Sequence record: MZ443780.1
DNA length: 64,000 nt
Direction: 5' to 3' (one strand)
The translations under genes and the position numbers were made by a program. Positions 2,796-21,404 of the stretch are shown one piece after another; position 1 is the stretch's first letter; every line of letters starts with the position of its first letter. Under the pieces are notes generated by a model, which was not told where the DNA came from, searched no databases, and saw nothing but the letters and a program-made list of their open reading frames with translations.

Positions 2796-3344
2796 ATGCG
2801 TATTCTCTCAGGCGACCCGGGCAAGGTTAACTTCGCGTTGTCTGTTCAAGAGTTTAAGGACAAACGCATTACCGTGCTGGGTACGCGGATGTTTCAACAT
2901 CCTATCCAGAACCTGCATTACGATATGCGCCAACCAGTCAAAGAGTTCATGAAAGAGCTTGAAGACATTTGGAAGCGCTATGGACCGTTTGATGCAATGT
3001 GCTTTGAACGTTTTCAGTCACGCGGATTAGGCGGCAACACCATTGAAGCAATCAGCCTCATGCTCGGTGTTATCTCGCTGTTCGCGCTGAAAAAGAATTG
3101 TCCAATTGATTTGATTACGGCTAGTCAGTGGAAGAACGCGTTTAACCGCTCGATGGATCTCAAGGGGTACTACGCGCAGCACAACCTGACTTCGAAAAAG
3201 AGTCGTAAAGCAATTCACGAATTTGATGCCAGCCTTATCGGCGTCTACACCTTCTACCGTCACTCAGGAATCAAACCATTTGCTGGCTTCCATCGCATCG
3301 TTGATGTGTATGTGCCGCGATTCCTTGAGGCGCCTGTACTTTGA
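2796..3344 (+). CDS. RuvC-like (poxvirus A22-type) Holliday junction resolvase
   Basis: ILSGDPGKVNFA, CFERFQ, TASQWK and HEFDA motifs give the RNase H-fold acidic catalytic residues. Confidence 0.85.
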   Translation: MRILSGDPGKVNFALSVQEFKDKRITVLGTRMFQHPIQNLHYDMRQPVKEFMKELEDIWKRYGPFDAMCFERFQSRGLGGNTIEAISLMLGVISLFALKKNCPIDLITASQWKNAFNRSMDLKGYYAQHNLTSKKSRKAIHEFDASLIGVYTFYRHSGIKPFAGFHRIVDVYVPRFLEAPVL

Positions 3345-3354
3345 GGATTCAGAA

Positions 3355-3720
3355 ATGAAACAAGAACTGTTGAACAAACTCGCATTTGATGTGCTGTCCG
3401 AATTCGGTGTAGCGATGTTCCTCGATCGTGGTGAAGTCGGCTACAACAACGAAAGCTACGCAACGTTTGAAACGCTGTTCAGCGTGAAGTCTGACGCTGA
3501 TGGTTCAACGCTGGCAGCAGACCTACGTGCTAAGATCGCAGAGCATCTGGAGAAGCTGAAAGCAGAAGGTATGACGCGCAACTACAACGGCAATACCCAG
3601 CGCATGGCTGTTGTTGTCGAGTCGCCGAAACTTACCTACCGTGAGCCTATGGCAAACGAAATTCCAGGCGCGATGCTGTACTCATTCTCCATTGGCTTCC
3701 CCTTAATTCTGGCCAATTAA
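3355..3720 (+). CDS. hypothetical protein
   Basis: GAGG RBS before ATG 3355 (MKQELL...), 121 aa. Confidence 0.7.
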   Translation: MKQELLNKLAFDVLSEFGVAMFLDRGEVGYNNESYATFETLFSVKSDADGSTLAADLRAKIAEHLEKLKAEGMTRNYNGNTQRMAVVVESPKLTYREPMANEIPGAMLYSFSIGFPLILAN

Positions 3721-3721
3721 T

Positions 3722-3730
3722 CTGTAAATA
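3722..3730 (+). promoter_or_regulatory. putative phage-sigma promoter motif CTGTAAATA
   Basis: Intergenic, 36 nt upstream of ATG 3767. Confidence 0.5.
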
Positions 3731-3766
3731 TCCTTACTTGGTTAATGTGTCTTGTAGGGTAGCGAA

Positions 3767-4471
3767 ATGGCGAAGTTAAAGAAAGAACGATCAGTCAAGG
3801 TCAAAGCGAAAGTTAAGCCTGTTGTGAAAACAAAGGCGTCGACCAAGACGAAGAAAACAAAGAAGGAAAAAGCAATTCCTATTCGTGTTGTGGCAGACAC
3901 TCGTCCTATTATCACCTGTCCTGAGATGGAAGATAAGCCTCAACCATTTAAGTTCAAGGGGCAGTGTCCCATAACGACCTGTCAGTATTGCACACGCGAA
4001 ACACCGACCGGTTGTATGGCGCTTGACCGTAAAGAAGCTGCTGACCGTTCAATCTCTAACAAGGAGATCCAGTATTACAAACGTGGCCTCTTCCCGGAAC
4101 TTATGGAGATGGATCAAAAGCAGTTGGACAATACGATCCGCCGCGCACAAACTCGTGCCCGTACTGCTATCTGTCTTACTATGTTTATTGCCGGGATTGA
4201 TGATTCTGATTGCGATCGTTCTTTCCAGTACGTAGAAGGTCGGAGCAGAGCCGTCGATCAAGTACACAACTATCTTGTGCAGACGTTCAACGATTATCGT
4301 CCGTGGATGCTCGCGTATCTCGACGATGAGAAACGTTTCGCAGAGATGGTGGGTAAAATAACCAATTCCGAATTTAATTTAGGTGCAGCACTTCGTTTGA
4401 CGCCTCGTAAGTATCAGACGTTCTGCCTAGCGCTGCAAAACCTTAAACAATCTGGAGACTCCAATGAGTAA
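3767..4471 (+). CDS. hypothetical protein, Lys-rich N-tail and Cys cluster
   Basis: 234 aa; CPITTCQYC...GC motif. Confidence 0.75.
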   Translation: MAKLKKERSVKVKAKVKPVVKTKASTKTKKTKKEKAIPIRVVADTRPIITCPEMEDKPQPFKFKGQCPITTCQYCTRETPTGCMALDRKEAADRSISNKEIQYYKRGLFPELMEMDQKQLDNTIRRAQTRARTAICLTMFIAGIDDSDCDRSFQYVEGRSRAVDQVHNYLVQTFNDYRPWMLAYLDDEKRFAEMVGKITNSEFNLGAALRLTPRKYQTFCLALQNLKQSGDSNE

Positions 4472-14743: not shown

Positions 14744-15781
14744 ATGAACAATAAGTCGAATCTCACAGGCGGTCAGATAGAAAGCGTCATGGACACAATG
14801 CTTCATGACTGCCTCCGTGAGATTGTTGAGAACACGGACATATTCGACGTTCAACTGACCTACCTGTTGAACATGATTACGTCGAATAAAAAGCGTAAGC
14901 CATACAACGCCGAGACTCGTGAACGTGCTATCAGCCTTTTGATTAAAGCGCTGTCTGTACCGCGTGATCAGAAGATGGTTTATATTCAGGAACTTAAAAT
15001 GGAGCGTAACTTCATTTATGTCTTCCTGGAAAATGTAATTAAACGGTACTACGCGGCTTATGTCGATCTCTATCGTGTATTCATTTCTACGCAAGACTCA
15101 ATCAAGCGTGAAGCGTACTCGAAGCGACTGGACGTGTTTGTCAGAATGTTTGGTGCTGAGTCACGCTCCAAGCTGTTTGTCGCGTTGTGCCGTCTGAACG
15201 ATCTTCTGCCGCAGTTCATGGAGTACTTCCACTCGGTGGTGGCTGACTTCTATAGACTATGCAGCAAGCAAACAAAATTTTACGTTGATACCAACCGAGG
15301 CAAGCTGTACGACTCGAAGGACGTGCGCCAGAACTTCTTGCGTAACGTCATTGTTGCGATCAACAAGTATGACTCATCGCGTGGTGCGATTGTGAGTTAT
15401 ACGAAGTGGTGGATCTTGAACGCCCAGACCTGTAGTAGTAGCGAGCATGAATACGGCATCGCGTACACTATTCCCCAGACTCAACGTAAGAAACTGGCTA
15501 CAGGCGAAGACACTACTTCTCTGAATTTCTCGGTAAGTCTCGATACACCTGCCAACGAATCTGATGAAGGTGCGGACGCGTCCCTACATCAAAAAGTGAG
15601 TGACCATCATCACTTAGAAGATCACGTTGATAGCGAGAGGCGTACTGAAAAACTGAGACTGCTTATTAAGCGCGTAGACCCACTCGGCGTTGCTCGTCTA
15701 ACGATGGACGTTGGGGAAGAGTTTGACAAGTTCGAACTCGATCTTATGCGTAGACACATGCAGGCTCAAAGGCTAGCCTAA
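14744..15781 (+). CDS. phage RNA polymerase sigma factor (sigma70 region 2 present; no obvious region 4)
   Basis: VRQNFLRNVIVAINKYDSSRGAIVSYTKWWILNA resembles the sigma70 region 2.2-2.4 signature (A..KFD..RG..F.TYA.WWI). Confidence 0.8.
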   Translation: MNNKSNLTGGQIESVMDTMLHDCLREIVENTDIFDVQLTYLLNMITSNKKRKPYNAETRERAISLLIKALSVPRDQKMVYIQELKMERNFIYVFLENVIKRYYAAYVDLYRVFISTQDSIKREAYSKRLDVFVRMFGAESRSKLFVALCRLNDLLPQFMEYFHSVVADFYRLCSKQTKFYVDTNRGKLYDSKDVRQNFLRNVIVAINKYDSSRGAIVSYTKWWILNAQTCSSSEHEYGIAYTIPQTQRKKLATGEDTTSLNFSVSLDTPANESDEGADASLHQKVSDHHHLEDHVDSERRTEKLRLLIKRVDPLGVARLTMDVGEEFDKFELDLMRRHMQAQRLA

Positions 15782-17168: not shown

Positions 17169-19700
17169 ATGGCGAAAACGAACAACAAGGCCGAGAAAAA
17201 GGCAGAGAAGAAAGCTAAAGTCAAAGCCAAGAAAAGTGGCGCATCGGCTGTAGCTTCTGACGATATCGGCGGCGTAGAGGTCATGGGCTTTGACCTTGCG
17301 AGTTTGATGGACGATGTGCTTGACGGCATCGAAAAGAAAACGAAAGTAAGCTCTCAGGATGCAGCACGTCACGCACCTCGTATTTCTACTGGTTGCCTTG
17401 CGCTTGACATGTACCTGTCTGGTGGTATTGTACCGGGCGGTTGGTATACGTTCAGCGGCGGTGAGCAGTCGTGCAAGTCAACAATGACCATGAGTATCAT
17501 GGCGAGCCTGATTCGTCTGCATTACTCTGGCATTAGTGTAGTGTTCGACTACGAAGGTTCAACCGATGCAGAGTACGTTGCTGGTCAGTTGAAGACGTTC
17601 GGCGTTAAAGTTGATCCGAAGACAATCTTCGGTGTGCGTGACGACGAAGACGGTAGTTGGATCGTTAAGCCTAAGATCCGTTACTATGCACCAGACAACG
17701 GTGAGCGCTTCTTCGATTATATGTCGATGCTGCGTCGTCGTCTGCCTGACAAGATCGTTGAGAAAGACGGCTCTGCGTACTACATCTTTGAGAACAACAA
17801 AGAGAACGCGAAGAAGCTGGCTGGCAAGTACGACAAGAAATGGTTCAGTCGTAACAACCAGTTCAAAGTCGCTGCGCCTGACGGTCACATGCAAGCGATG
17901 GTTATCGTTGACTCTTATCCGGCAATGCTGCCTGATCAGGTCGATGATGATGACGGTTCGAAAGCAATGGCGCTGCAAGCGCGTATGTTCTCTGACGGCA
18001 TCAAACGTTTCCGTGGCGGTATGCGTCGTAAGATGATGACCATCGTTGGCGTTAACCAGTTGCGTCAGAAACCTGCTGTAATGTTCGGCAGCCCTGAGTA
18101 TGAGCCCGGTGGCGATGCGTTGAAGTTCTACTGCTTCGACCGTGATACTCAGATTCGTACTAATCACGGTGTGCTGACTGCACCTCAGATCAAAGAGCTG
18201 TTGGACAACGGCACTGAGGTGAGCGTTGAGTCGTTCGATGGCTACCAGAAGATCAATGGTGCGTGGAAAGTTGAAGACGCTCCGTTCCCAATCGAACTGA
18301 ACGCTGGTGGACACGCATACGTTGGTAGCGCTGAACACCGCCAGTTTACTTTCATGTTCGACACAACTGCTGATGGTATGGCCGTGCTGCGTCCTGAGTG
18401 GAATACGCTCAACCAGCTTGCTCAGTACCCAGAGCAGAAAGGTCAGTATGCAGCACTGCGCGTACCGCCTGTGAAAGAACTGAAAGAGAACGTGCCTGAT
18501 GCGTTTGATGAAGCAAGCCAGCTCGTTAGTAACCTGCTTGGTAATGCTGACTTCGAAAGCGTACAACTGCCTCTGGCATCTTTCGGTGATACCACGTTCG
18601 CAGCGAACGTACTGACCACCAATATGATTGGCGATCAGGACGATGTTCACACGTTCTCTTTGTGGGCACGTCACCTGCTGTCTATCGGTATCTACGCGTA
18701 TGCTGACGAAAGCGGTCTGCACATTCCGGGTCTGAACAAACATGAACTGGAAGCGGCTGTAGCGCAAGACGAACTCGGTGCGTTTGCTGGTATCAGCTTC
18801 GAAGCCACCAGCCGTCAACGTCAAACGCAGATGCTGTCTGTTATCGCTGACGTGTTCCCTGAACTGACTCGCTACGTTCTGGACTATCAGTTGCAGACCG
18901 GTCAGGATAAAATCTATCTGGGCCCAGAGCAAGACTTTGCTCAGGCACTCGATCTGATTCTGCACAAACAGATTGAAGGTTACGATGACCTGTACGATCT
19001 GCTGATGCAGCAACTGGCCTACGTTGAAGACTGGTACAACTTCGACAACTCAATCGTTCCTGTTCCGTTCACGCTGAAAGCTATCGTGAATCCGACTGAG
19101 TTCTGGGATGTGAACGTTGCCGAAACGTCTGTTGTGATCACTAACGGCTTCGTCAGTCACAACTCTGATGTGCGTGTGCGTCTGGCCTCTCGTGCTGTTC
19201 CTGAAGGTTGGCCGAAACTCAAAGACGCTCCAGGCATCGTTGGTGAGAAGTCTGTTACTGTCGAAGGCGGCACTGACCGCTATCGTTTCATTGCTGCTAA
19301 GACCATCAAGAACAAGATGGGTGGCATCCCTAACCAGAGCACTTGGCTGCGCTTGTGGGAAGCTGACGGCAACGGTGAAGCGCGCGGCTTTGACCCAGTG
19401 TTTGATACGTGGCACTATCTGAAAACTCTCGGCCTGATTAACGGTACTCGTAAGAGCTTCAAGATCAAAGCGCCTTGCCCGCTCGCATCTGATGTTAAGA
19501 TGGACTGGGATGACTTCCGTACTCTCATCAACGGCAGCAAGACTCAGGTTGTCGATGTGTGTAAGAAACTGAAAGTCAAACCTGCTGGCTTGCGTCTGTG
19601 GTGCTTCAAGTTCGTGCAGTCCACCAAGGGCAACGAGATGTTGAAGAACGCTATCAGTAAGTCGGCGAAGTCTTCTAACGACGATGACGACGACGAGTAA
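17169..19700 (+). CDS. recA: RecA/UvsX-like recombinase containing an intein (about 499 aa after splicing)
   Basis: ISTGCLALDMYLSGG, Walker A variant GGEQSCKST, VIVDS, ARMFS, NQLRQK, EPGGDALKFY/SDVRVRL, KNKMG motifs. Confidence 0.92.
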   Translation: MAKTNNKAEKKAEKKAKVKAKKSGASAVASDDIGGVEVMGFDLASLMDDVLDGIEKKTKVSSQDAARHAPRISTGCLALDMYLSGGIVPGGWYTFSGGEQSCKSTMTMSIMASLIRLHYSGISVVFDYEGSTDAEYVAGQLKTFGVKVDPKTIFGVRDDEDGSWIVKPKIRYYAPDNGERFFDYMSMLRRRLPDKIVEKDGSAYYIFENNKENAKKLAGKYDKKWFSRNNQFKVAAPDGHMQAMVIVDSYPAMLPDQVDDDDGSKAMALQARMFSDGIKRFRGGMRRKMMTIVGVNQLRQKPAVMFGSPEYEPGGDALKFYCFDRDTQIRTNHGVLTAPQIKELLDNGTEVSVESFDGYQKINGAWKVEDAPFPIELNAGGHAYVGSAEHRQFTFMFDTTADGMAVLRPEWNTLNQLAQYPEQKGQYAALRVPPVKELKENVPDAFDEASQLVSNLLGNADFESVQLPLASFGDTTFAANVLTTNMIGDQDDVHTFSLWARHLLSIGIYAYADESGLHIPGLNKHELEAAVAQDELGAFAGISFEATSRQRQTQMLSVIADVFPELTRYVLDYQLQTGQDKIYLGPEQDFAQALDLILHKQIEGYDDLYDLLMQQLAYVEDWYNFDNSIVPVPFTLKAIVNPTEFWDVNVAETSVVITNGFVSHNSDVRVRLASRAVPEGWPKLKDAPGIVGEKSVTVEGGTDRYRFIAAKTIKNKMGGIPNQSTWLRLWEADGNGEARGFDPVFDTWHYLKTLGLINGTRKSFKIKAPCPLASDVKMDWDDFRTLINGSKTQVVDVCKKLKVKPAGLRLWCFKFVQSTKGNEMLKNAISKSAKSSNDDDDDE
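18132..19163 (+). mobile_element. class 1 intein, 344 aa, in RecA (degenerate or absent homing endonuclease)
   Basis: Starts CFDRDT, block B SAEH, block F FWDVNV, ends SHN with +1 Ser. Removing it restores ALKFY-SDVR. Confidence 0.9.
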
Positions 19701-19707
19701 CACACGC

Positions 19708-19734
19708 GGGAGGGCTTCGGCTCTCCCATCTTTT
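19708..19734 (+). terminator. intrinsic terminator
   Basis: GGGAGGGC-TTCG-GCTCTCCC followed by ATCTTTT. Confidence 0.7.
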
Positions 19735-20233: not shown

Positions 20234-20266
20234 ATGGGAGAGCCGGATGGCCTCCCATTTTTTTTT
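20234..20266 (+). terminator. strong intrinsic terminator
   Basis: ATGGGAG...CTCCCAT stem followed by T9. Confidence 0.85.
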
Positions 20267-20282
20267 ATTCTGAGGAATTTTT

Positions 20283-21356
20283 ATGAGCCAGCATAAAACT
20301 GAATTGTGGGATGAAGCTCTAGGCGGTGCACTGTCTGCTAAATACAATCAAACGGCTGAGTACGTCCCCGTGATTCGTAGCGTCAATGCACGACTCGTCG
20401 AGGAGATTGCTCCATTCCGTAGACGGCTTGTTGCGGGGTTTGAAAAGTTCCTGACTGACGCTAAAGGTAAGATTGAATACTTCGGTCCTTCACTCGAACA
20501 GTTCGCGTTATGGCTACAGCCGAACGGTAACTTCCAAAAGTCTGACTATGATATTGCTGTATTGTCTCATACGCATACCCATTTCTTTTGGCAGTATACC
20601 CGAGCAGAGTTTGAGTTCGAAGAAGAAGTGATGGAGCATATCATCGAATCAGAAACACCTACCAAGATACCAGCGTCAATCATCAAGCAACTTCCTTACT
20701 GGACTCAATGGGTACGCGCACCTATAGGCGTTGATATCACAGGGGAACCTGCTGCATCTCAAGGCGCTAACCTGCACTTCTTTGGCGCTCTTGTGAGTTA
20801 TTTGCGCTACGACAATAAAACGTTTCTGAATCTAAACGCGCCTGTGTTTACTGAGCGTGGGGATTGGAAAGACCCAGCGCTTATGGCTGCTAACGTTCGC
20901 GTGTGCATTGATGATGACATTGACTTCACCGACCCGAATACAATCATTCCTTATATGCAGGGTACGCATGAAAATTTGAGTGAGGAAATGAAACAAAAGA
21001 TATTCGGTGCTGTGCGTGAATGGGCGCCGAAGATGATCAGTTGTGTGTTATTCTTGTGCTCCCAGCAAGAAGCAGTATACAAACAGGGTGCAGTGCAGCA
21101 AGCAGTTCGCCGTAAAGGCAACAACTATAAAATGCAAGCGCTGTCCAAATCGAAACAGTTTACGGTCGGCGGTGAGTTCGTTGACCAAATACGTGAGTAC
21201 GAAGCTGACGCTATGCGCTCTGCATCAGGGCAGCGCCGTGCTCATATCAGACGTGGGCACTATCACCACTTCTGGACAGGGCCAAAAACAGGTGAGCGTA
21301 AACTCATTTGCAAATGGCTTCCACCGAGCATTGTTCGCGGTACTGCCGCAGAGTAA
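20283..21356 (+). CDS. AcrVA2/FinQ-family protein
   Basis: W..T...F.F.EE...P..IP.SI...LP.W, LFLC and RAHIRRGHYHHFWTG...KWLPP align with Moraxella AcrVA2 motifs recalled from memory (LPDWC, LWLC, RPHIRRGHWHGYWQG...RWQP). Confidence 0.75.
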   Translation: MSQHKTELWDEALGGALSAKYNQTAEYVPVIRSVNARLVEEIAPFRRRLVAGFEKFLTDAKGKIEYFGPSLEQFALWLQPNGNFQKSDYDIAVLSHTHTHFFWQYTRAEFEFEEEVMEHIIESETPTKIPASIIKQLPYWTQWVRAPIGVDITGEPAASQGANLHFFGALVSYLRYDNKTFLNLNAPVFTERGDWKDPALMAANVRVCIDDDIDFTDPNTIIPYMQGTHENLSEEMKQKIFGAVREWAPKMISCVLFLCSQQEAVYKQGAVQQAVRRKGNNYKMQALSKSKQFTVGGEFVDQIREYEADAMRSASGQRRAHIRRGHYHHFWTGPKTGERKLICKWLPPSIVRGTAAE

Positions 21357-21404
21357 TAGCTCTTTTCTAAACTCCACGTATGGGCGTTATGCCCGGAGGT
21401 TAAT

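Follow-up and report, generated by a model that had tools for sequence, protein, structure and literature searches.

An AcrVA2/FinQ-family gene exchanged as a whole-gene allelic cassette between near-identical Erwinia jumbo phages: a candidate nascent-peptide-directed mRNA silencer

What would an AcrVA2-like protein silence when it is carried by a jumbo phage, and how does its gene come to differ deeply between phages that are otherwise nearly identical? To our knowledge, no bacterial protein other than AcrVA2 has been found to bring about the destruction of one specific mRNA by sensing the nascent product as this leaves the ribosome, and we know of no family target other than Cas12a that has been defined at the peptide level, despite the thousands of members found on mobile elements. 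Here we describe the computational analysis of such a gene, pEaSNUABM40_00250, in a 64,000-nucleotide stretch (hereafter the window) of the 267,121-bp genome of Erwinia phage pEa_SNUABM_40 (MZ443780.1), an Alexandravirus with Erwinia amylovora as its host; this source is in keeping with the enterobacterial jumbo phage that the original prediction, made from the letters alone, had named. As far as our searches show, what is new here is the allelic cassette in which the gene lies, together with a natural near-isogenic phage pair that differs in it, while the protein itself joins a known family; no earlier description of such a whole-gene cassette or phage pair was found in the literature searched.

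Positions are given in window numbering, in which the window position equals the record position minus 186,000. The gene occupies 20283..21356 on the + strand and encodes 357 amino acids plus a stop codon; a ribosome-binding site, GAGGA, was read from the sequence at 20272..20276 (+), 6 nt before the ATG. The product is entered in the record as 'hypothetical protein'. It matches phrog_6160 (E 5.5e-52), and the gene is present as one copy per phage in all of the phage records.

When the protein was searched with phmmer against 177,635 PDB sequences, AcrVA2 was the sole match (7ci1_A, also 7ci2; E 2.5e-8), aligned in two collinear stretches covering residues 87-145 and 254-351 of the query. A profile built from eight relatives matched AcrVA2 at E 1.3e-9, and tblastn matched finQ-annotated genes on 565 plasmids, 547 of them conjugative, at 25% identity over residues 101-348 (E 4e-6). 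The original prediction had argued for AcrVA2/FinQ membership from short strings set beside those of AcrVA2; the quoted window strings are all collinear (at residues 102, 124, 255, 293, 303, 319 and 344), their matching blocks all fall within the two HMMER stretches against 7ci1_A, and the E values above bear the assignment out. An AlphaFold2 model, computed from a shallow alignment of 11 sequences, had a mean pLDDT of 79 and a pTM of 0.81. Foldseek comparison of this model with the PDB returned 7ci1_A, 7ci1_B and 7ci2_A at E 5e-11 to 9e-11 with probability 1.00, over about 350 alignment columns at approximately 15-17% identity, and nothing significant beyond the AcrVA2 chains (next match E 0.5), so that the structural comparison led to the same protein as the sequence searches. 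TM-scores to the AcrVA2 crystal structure were only 0.46-0.56, with an rmsd of 8-9 A, as would be expected at about 16% identity in a protein of several domains. The likeness to AcrVA2 goes far beyond chance, and profile and sequence comparison confirmed the pEaSNUABM40_00250 protein as a genuine, previously unannotated member of the known AcrVA2/FinQ family.

Local scans with Pfam-A, NCBIfam and PADLOC gave no match for the protein. The local Pfam copy, which apparently lacks PF26125, returned no AcrVA2-like model for the relatives either; the precomputed PF26125 'AcrVA2-like' assignment is found on a 95%-identical protein (P0001) and on relatives of the allele classes B and C described below. 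Word-indexed searches found only 8-11 relatives, and the size of the family was therefore taken from an exhaustive profile search, which gave 2,665 cluster representatives at E <= 1e-3, of which 1,104 also passed E <= 1e-10. Among the distant members in Erwinia jumbo phages, that of RisingSun is annotated 'putative mycothiosynthase' and that of Special G 'putative protein FinQ'; in SPN3US-like Salmonella and Escherichia jumbo phages the match covered the C-terminal module only.

In the published mutational study of AcrVA2, W79A and D89A gave partial loss of function, and H286A, R288A and H291A weakened the down-regulation of mRNA with Cas12a still bound. After correction for the PDB chain index, which is one off the numbering of that study, these residues (W79, D89, H286, R288 and H291) were found to align with W103, E113, H321, R323 and H326 of the window protein. 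The five functionally tested positions are thus all kept, D89 as Glu, and the His motif that the original prediction had singled out is intact; its three residues are encoded within nt 21243-21260 (+). In an alignment of 126 diverse family representatives, H321, R323 and H326 were invariant (126/126), as was P138 (126/126), and W103 was kept in 120; position 113 holds Asp in 91 sequences and Glu in another 11, giving an acidic residue in 102 of the 126.

These conservation data bear on the possibility that the fold is kept and the activity is another one, the protein being a ribosome or finished-protein binder that acts stoichiometrically, or a general translation modulator, with no decay directed by the nascent chain. 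Such an activity would sit comfortably with a structural alignment of only about 15-17% identity and with the finding of the AcrVA2 paper that AcrVA2 also binds mature Cas12a; moreover, the enzyme that AcrVA2 recruits is, according to a review of the 2026 Nature paper, a cellular one, and may be engaged differently in Erwinia. However, the very residues whose mutation uncouples mRNA loss from binding in AcrVA2 do not vary across the family, which argues that the step downstream of binding is conserved, and we regard a change of activity as decidedly unlikely.

The degree of conservation was found to vary widely along the protein. The N-terminal helical part, residues 1-99 (20283..20579, +), is clade- and allele-specific, with an identity between allele classes of 12% for residues 1-44 and 22% for residues 45-99; residues 1-28 have a pLDDT below 50 in the model, and distant family members are mostly alignable from about residue 100 on and not over residues 1-99. 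There follows a Trp/Pro block, residues 100-146 (20580..20720, +), which contains W103, E113, P130, P138 and W140, corresponds to the first HMMER stretch and has 44% between-class identity. The central beta-sheet region, residues 147-233 (20721..20981, +), for which the model predicts strands at 141-226, is at 19% the most variable part between the allele classes, the first 44 residues aside. Between-class identity then rises through 25% (residues 234-270) and 30% (residues 271-317) to 65% in the C-terminal module with the HxRxxH motif, residues 318-357 (21234..21353, +), which is matched in the second HMMER stretch.

Judged by these identities, conservation is concentrated in the C-terminal HxRxxH module, and variability in the N-terminal and central parts. 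A conserved C-terminus with a variable N-terminus fits the published likeness of AcrVA2 and FinQ, which lies in the C-terminal domain with divergence towards the N-terminus. It also fits the association of the C-terminal part of AcrVA2 with ribosomes and polysomes, as given in the review of the 2026 Nature paper; by the same account, AcrVA2 recruits a cellular enzyme, and the 3' part of the mRNA, left untranslated, is degraded.

Comparison with the sister phage pEa_SNUABM_23 revealed how these differences are distributed between genomes. The two phages are collinear and 99.0-99.7% identical across the 64-kb window, in which the sole segment of at least 30 nt left unaligned by megablast is 20266-21257. 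The four flanking proteins are 99-100% identical between the phages, whereas the AcrVA2-like proteins are 33% identical. In direct alignment, identity to pEa_SNUABM_23 stops directly past the T-run of a hairpin upstream of the gene and returns, near-perfect, about 15 nt past the stop codon. From these two edges, the unit replaced is the entire gene including its ribosome-binding site, a whole-gene allelic cassette at 20266..21371 (+) that is the only gene-sized stretch in the 64 kb failing to align with pEa_SNUABM_23. An intragenic recombination junction at the HxR motif was considered and rejected, the blastn HSP having merely run into the motif-coding 3' end, which is approximately 80% identical.

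The left boundary of the cassette is formed by a G+C-rich hairpin and the run of nine T that comes after it (20236..20266, +; from the sequence and a centroid RNA fold), which looks like an intrinsic terminator. The window contains the hairpin a single time, and 8 of 12 related loci have exactly one copy each, always immediately 5' of the AcrVA2-like homologue; its position is independent of the allele class or the upstream gene. The right boundary is a conserved intergenic block with a small hairpin and the ribosome-binding site of the next gene (21372..21404, +), near-identical 3' of the homologue, irrespective of allele class, in each of the eight Alexandravirus-like phages inspected. Both intergenic blocks are kept around all three of the allele classes that are described next. 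A repeat-based mechanism for the cassette was rejected, since the bounding hairpin is specific to the locus and is not a dispersed repeat.

The order of genes at the locus (SSB, UvsX-like, a gene of about 140 aa, an optional gene of about 235 aa, and the AcrVA2-like gene) is shared by Alexandravirus, Rivsvirus, Yoloswagvirus and Sasquatchvirus phages of Erwinia and Dickeya. The locus is occupied by at least three allele classes, mutually 24-36% identical. Class A comprises the alleles of pEa_SNUABM_40, pEa_SNUABM_3 and pEa_SNUABM_20 together with those of two metagenome or assembly contigs; among phage records it was seen in four only, which represent these three phages. Class B is found in SNUABM_23, SNUABM_30, AD1 and Alexandra, with 67-91% identity to one another, and the allele of the Dickeya phage AD1 is 85-91% identical to those of the Erwinia phages. 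Class C (SNUABM_33, _21, _5, Y3 and Yoloswag) is looser, at 35-56% identity among its members. Among the relatives compared, the allele class did not co-vary with the host genus, the optional 235-aa gene or the downstream gene.

The optional gene, which most relatives carry, lies at 3153-3854 in locus L004 and at 3247-3954 in contig L012, and in the same position in L003 and L005-L010; the window lacks it, as do pEa_SNUABM_23 and pEa_SNUABM_30, and no PHROG match was obtained for it. Its variable presence indicates a small plastic region downstream of the UvsX-like gene.

Alleles also cross between less similar backbones. Contigs L003 and L012 have more distant backbones (UvsX-like protein 84-85%, g251 53-74% identical), yet carry the window allele at 91-95%. 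For L012, a 265,951-bp metagenome contig with a class A allele 95% identical to the window protein at the amino acid level, dS against the window was 0.33 for the allele and 0.71, 1.36 and 1.92 for flanking genes. Related jumbo phages evidently recombine at the AcrVA2-like locus. Against the same L012 allele, dN/dS was 0.067 for the gene and 0.02-0.12 in every region of the protein, the class-specific N-terminus included, values which indicate that the gene is under strong purifying selection within its class.

As a separate observation, the AcrVA2-like gene of contig L003 (4001-5131; GCA_007314735.1, AAHPOS010000001.1) is broken by one deletion and fused in frame to the downstream gene, giving a 376-aa protein (P0002) without the C-terminal HxRxxH region; this could be a natural loss or an assembly error. 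The contig, 266,303 bp long and apparently of Alexandravirus jumbo phage type, with a UvsX-like protein 85% identical to that of the window, comes from an assembly labelled Salmonella enterica serovar Infantis, where it could represent contamination, a carrier state or an unrecognised host.

The setting of the gene gives some reason to consider a core factor for host takeover or self-regulation, which would switch off a single abundant host protein or adjust a phage gene in the ordinary course of infection and not as counter-defence. The position after the sigma-factor-like, SSB and UvsX-like genes is fixed in four genera, the gene is single-copy in every record, and the purifying selection is strong; with its one fixed site next to the SSB and UvsX-like genes in all related phages inspected, it resembles a core gene more than it does the accessory genes typical of counter-defence. 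Such a role, however, would leave unexplained why alleles 24-36% identical sit in backbones 84-100% identical in UvsX, and why the whole gene has been replaced repeatedly. The L003 copy lacking the motif region would in addition suggest that the gene is dispensable, if it is not an assembly error. On balance a core role is considered unlikely.

Little further indication of function came from the neighbourhood. Upstream, a long + strand block carries a sigma-factor-like gene, SSB, an 843-aa UvsX/RecA-like gene and a 142-aa gene; genes of 252, 100 and 546 aa follow downstream, also in a + strand block. The neighbours did not match defence or anti-defence families, and no Acr or Aca gene, AcrVA1-like ones included, was detected among the adjacent genes. 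Family searches gave no match for g249, g251, g253 or the optional 235-aa gene, which hence provide no guilt-by-association clue. The gene at 14744-15781 gave a match at E 1e-157 to phrog_17569, a phage family named 'RNA polymerase sigma factor', and its presence just upstream may bear on the transcription of the block.

A promoter scan found no sigma-70-type promoter upstream of the AcrVA2-like gene, and no Rfam families were found around it. Its ATG lies about 20 nt past the end of the terminator-like hairpin. This arrangement is repeated in the block: terminator-like hairpins close both the UvsX-like gene (19708-19727) and the 142-aa gene (20236-20266), the next start follows some 20 nt on in each case, and no sigma-70-type promoter was found between these hairpins and the next starts. 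Either read-through is the rule here, or the hairpins have another role, for example in the stability or processing of RNA.

The UvsX/RecA-like gene (17169-19700) is itself unusual, encoding 843 aa against a profile length of about 480-500. A 344-aa insertion (18132-19163) lies within the conserved RecA 'ALKFY' motif, starts with Cys and ends in His-Asn followed by Ser, which are intein-like boundary residues; no Pfam profile of an intein, Hint domain or homing endonuclease matched it, nor did any PDB sequence. The long form, of about 830-850 aa, is common to all of the related phages.

Turning to the target, the AcrVA2 paper describes orthologues on plasmids and megaphages, typically without Cas12a, and suggests that the family may have other targets. 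It also notes that a block of biogenesis leaves protein already in the cell untouched. FinQ lowers the transfer-gene mRNA of the F plasmid; the mechanism itself has been demonstrated for AcrVA2 only. E. amylovora is described in one paper as having type I-E CRISPR-Cas and a type I-F remnant array, with no mention of Cas12a, and the original prediction, which held Cas12a to be rare in such hosts, agrees with that description.

On this basis we favour, at a probability of roughly 55%, the reading that the gene encodes a functional AcrVA2/FinQ-family protein, a nascent-peptide-directed mRNA silencer whose target would be something other than Cas12a, made after infection, with the allele classes directed at different targets. 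The conserved C-terminal HxRxxH module would dock on translating ribosomes, the variable N-terminal and central parts would recognise a short peptide at the start of one nascent protein, and the docked protein would then trigger, through a host enzyme, decay of the mRNA being read. The split of the protein into conserved and variable parts agrees with these proposed docking and recognition roles. Because the family blocks synthesis and does not act on existing protein, the target in the case of a lytic phage is most likely a product whose synthesis begins only once the cell is infected. It might belong to an inducible host response or to a competing phage or plasmid, whereas a defence protein with constitutive expression is a less probable target.

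That the target would not be Cas12a follows from the description, in one paper, of E. amylovora with type I-E and a I-F remnant only. Homology to AcrVA2 is what speaks for the opposite, namely a true Cas12a inhibitor retained for hosts with type V-A CRISPR-Cas. The isolation host, again as described in that one paper, has a type I-E system without Cas12a, most family members are found without Cas12a, the greatest difference from AcrVA2 lies outside the C-terminal module, and an AcrVA1-like or other Acr neighbour was not detected; retention for Cas12a therefore appears highly improbable.

The favoured silencer reading gains its view of the classes from the cassette. Deep, individually constrained classes swapped among near-identical backbones suggest discrete alternative specificities, and the allele classes most likely recognise different targets or variants of one target. 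Taken further, the classes might be alternative 'address labels' on a constant ribosome-docking module, with retargeting by a whole-gene swap between the intergenic anchors; this extension is offered tentatively, as possible though doubtful. If true, it would represent a natural modular polymorphism of specificity for nascent-peptide-directed silencing.

The same biochemistry might also serve as a weapon against other mobile elements, silencing an early gene that belongs to a co-infecting or superinfecting phage, or to a plasmid or prophage resident in the cell, in which case the allele classes would follow different competitors. FinQ hits the transfer genes of a rival plasmid and its carriers are nearly all conjugative, as counted above; a block of biogenesis works best on proteins made de novo, which are those of an incoming competitor. 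Many close jumbo phages come from the same kind of South Korean stream-water samples, and these related phages evidently recombine at the locus. The occurrence of class B in the Dickeya phage AD1, with class not following host genus, is neutral to this explanation. We consider a weapon of this kind fairly unlikely as the specific role.

The original prediction as a whole thus stood with regard to the family, the type of phage, the His motif and a host without described Cas12a, and fell short with regard to novelty. It had presented silencing of a target other than Cas12a as an undescribed counter-defence, which was overstated: that central idea is already in the literature, since the AcrVA2 paper has megaphage orthologues without Cas12a and proposes other targets. 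The prediction also left out of account that a block of biogenesis spares the protein that a cell has already made, and its co-translational silencing of a host defence or regulatory gene stays a proposal from homology. In addition, a huge-phage survey (2020) had noted proteins clustering with AcrVA2, and an AcrVA2 homologue of a Shewanella phage has been described previously. Experiments on jumbo-phage members of the family were not found in the literature searched. On its own, pEaSNUABM40_00250 leaves the picture of the AcrVA2/FinQ family unchanged. The natural near-isogenic pair makes the question of silencing targets other than Cas12a approachable descriptively, and infections with pEa_SNUABM_40 and pEa_SNUABM_23, if compared, could reveal the first such target of the family.

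Among known systems, AcrVA2 of a Moraxella bovoculi prophage (7ci1, 7ci2) is the nearest of known structure, and the window protein, which is predicted to share its three-part fold over the whole length, has the same Trp block and HxRxxH motif and is of similar size (357 against about 322 aa). The window protein differs in an extra clade-specific N-terminal segment and in the low identity of about 15-17%; its carrier is a jumbo phage of virulent type and not a prophage, and an accompanying acrVA1 gene was not seen. FinQ, which is found on IncI-type and F-like conjugative plasmids, belongs to the same family, at 25% identity over residues 101-348, and works in Enterobacterales without Cas12a, lowering the mRNA of its target genes. 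Unlike the window protein, FinQ is plasmid-borne, is directed at F transfer genes and has an unrelated N-terminal part; the gene studied here lies on a 267-kb phage genome and not on a conjugative plasmid. The homologues at the same locus in Alexandravirus, Rivsvirus, Yoloswagvirus and Sasquatchvirus phages (phrog_6160) share the synteny, the motif and, by comparison of predicted structures, the fold (BFVD TM-scores 0.70-0.85), yet are only 27-36% identical to the window protein. Finally, T4-type phages show modular gene shuffling in hyperplastic regions, with genes exchanged between conserved intergenic elements. The cassette resembles this shuffling in that an entire gene is exchanged between a hairpin with T-run on the left and a hairpin with ribosome-binding site on the right, and differs from it in that the item exchanged is no unrelated gene but a deeply diverged homologous allele, and in that the bounding elements are unique to the locus.
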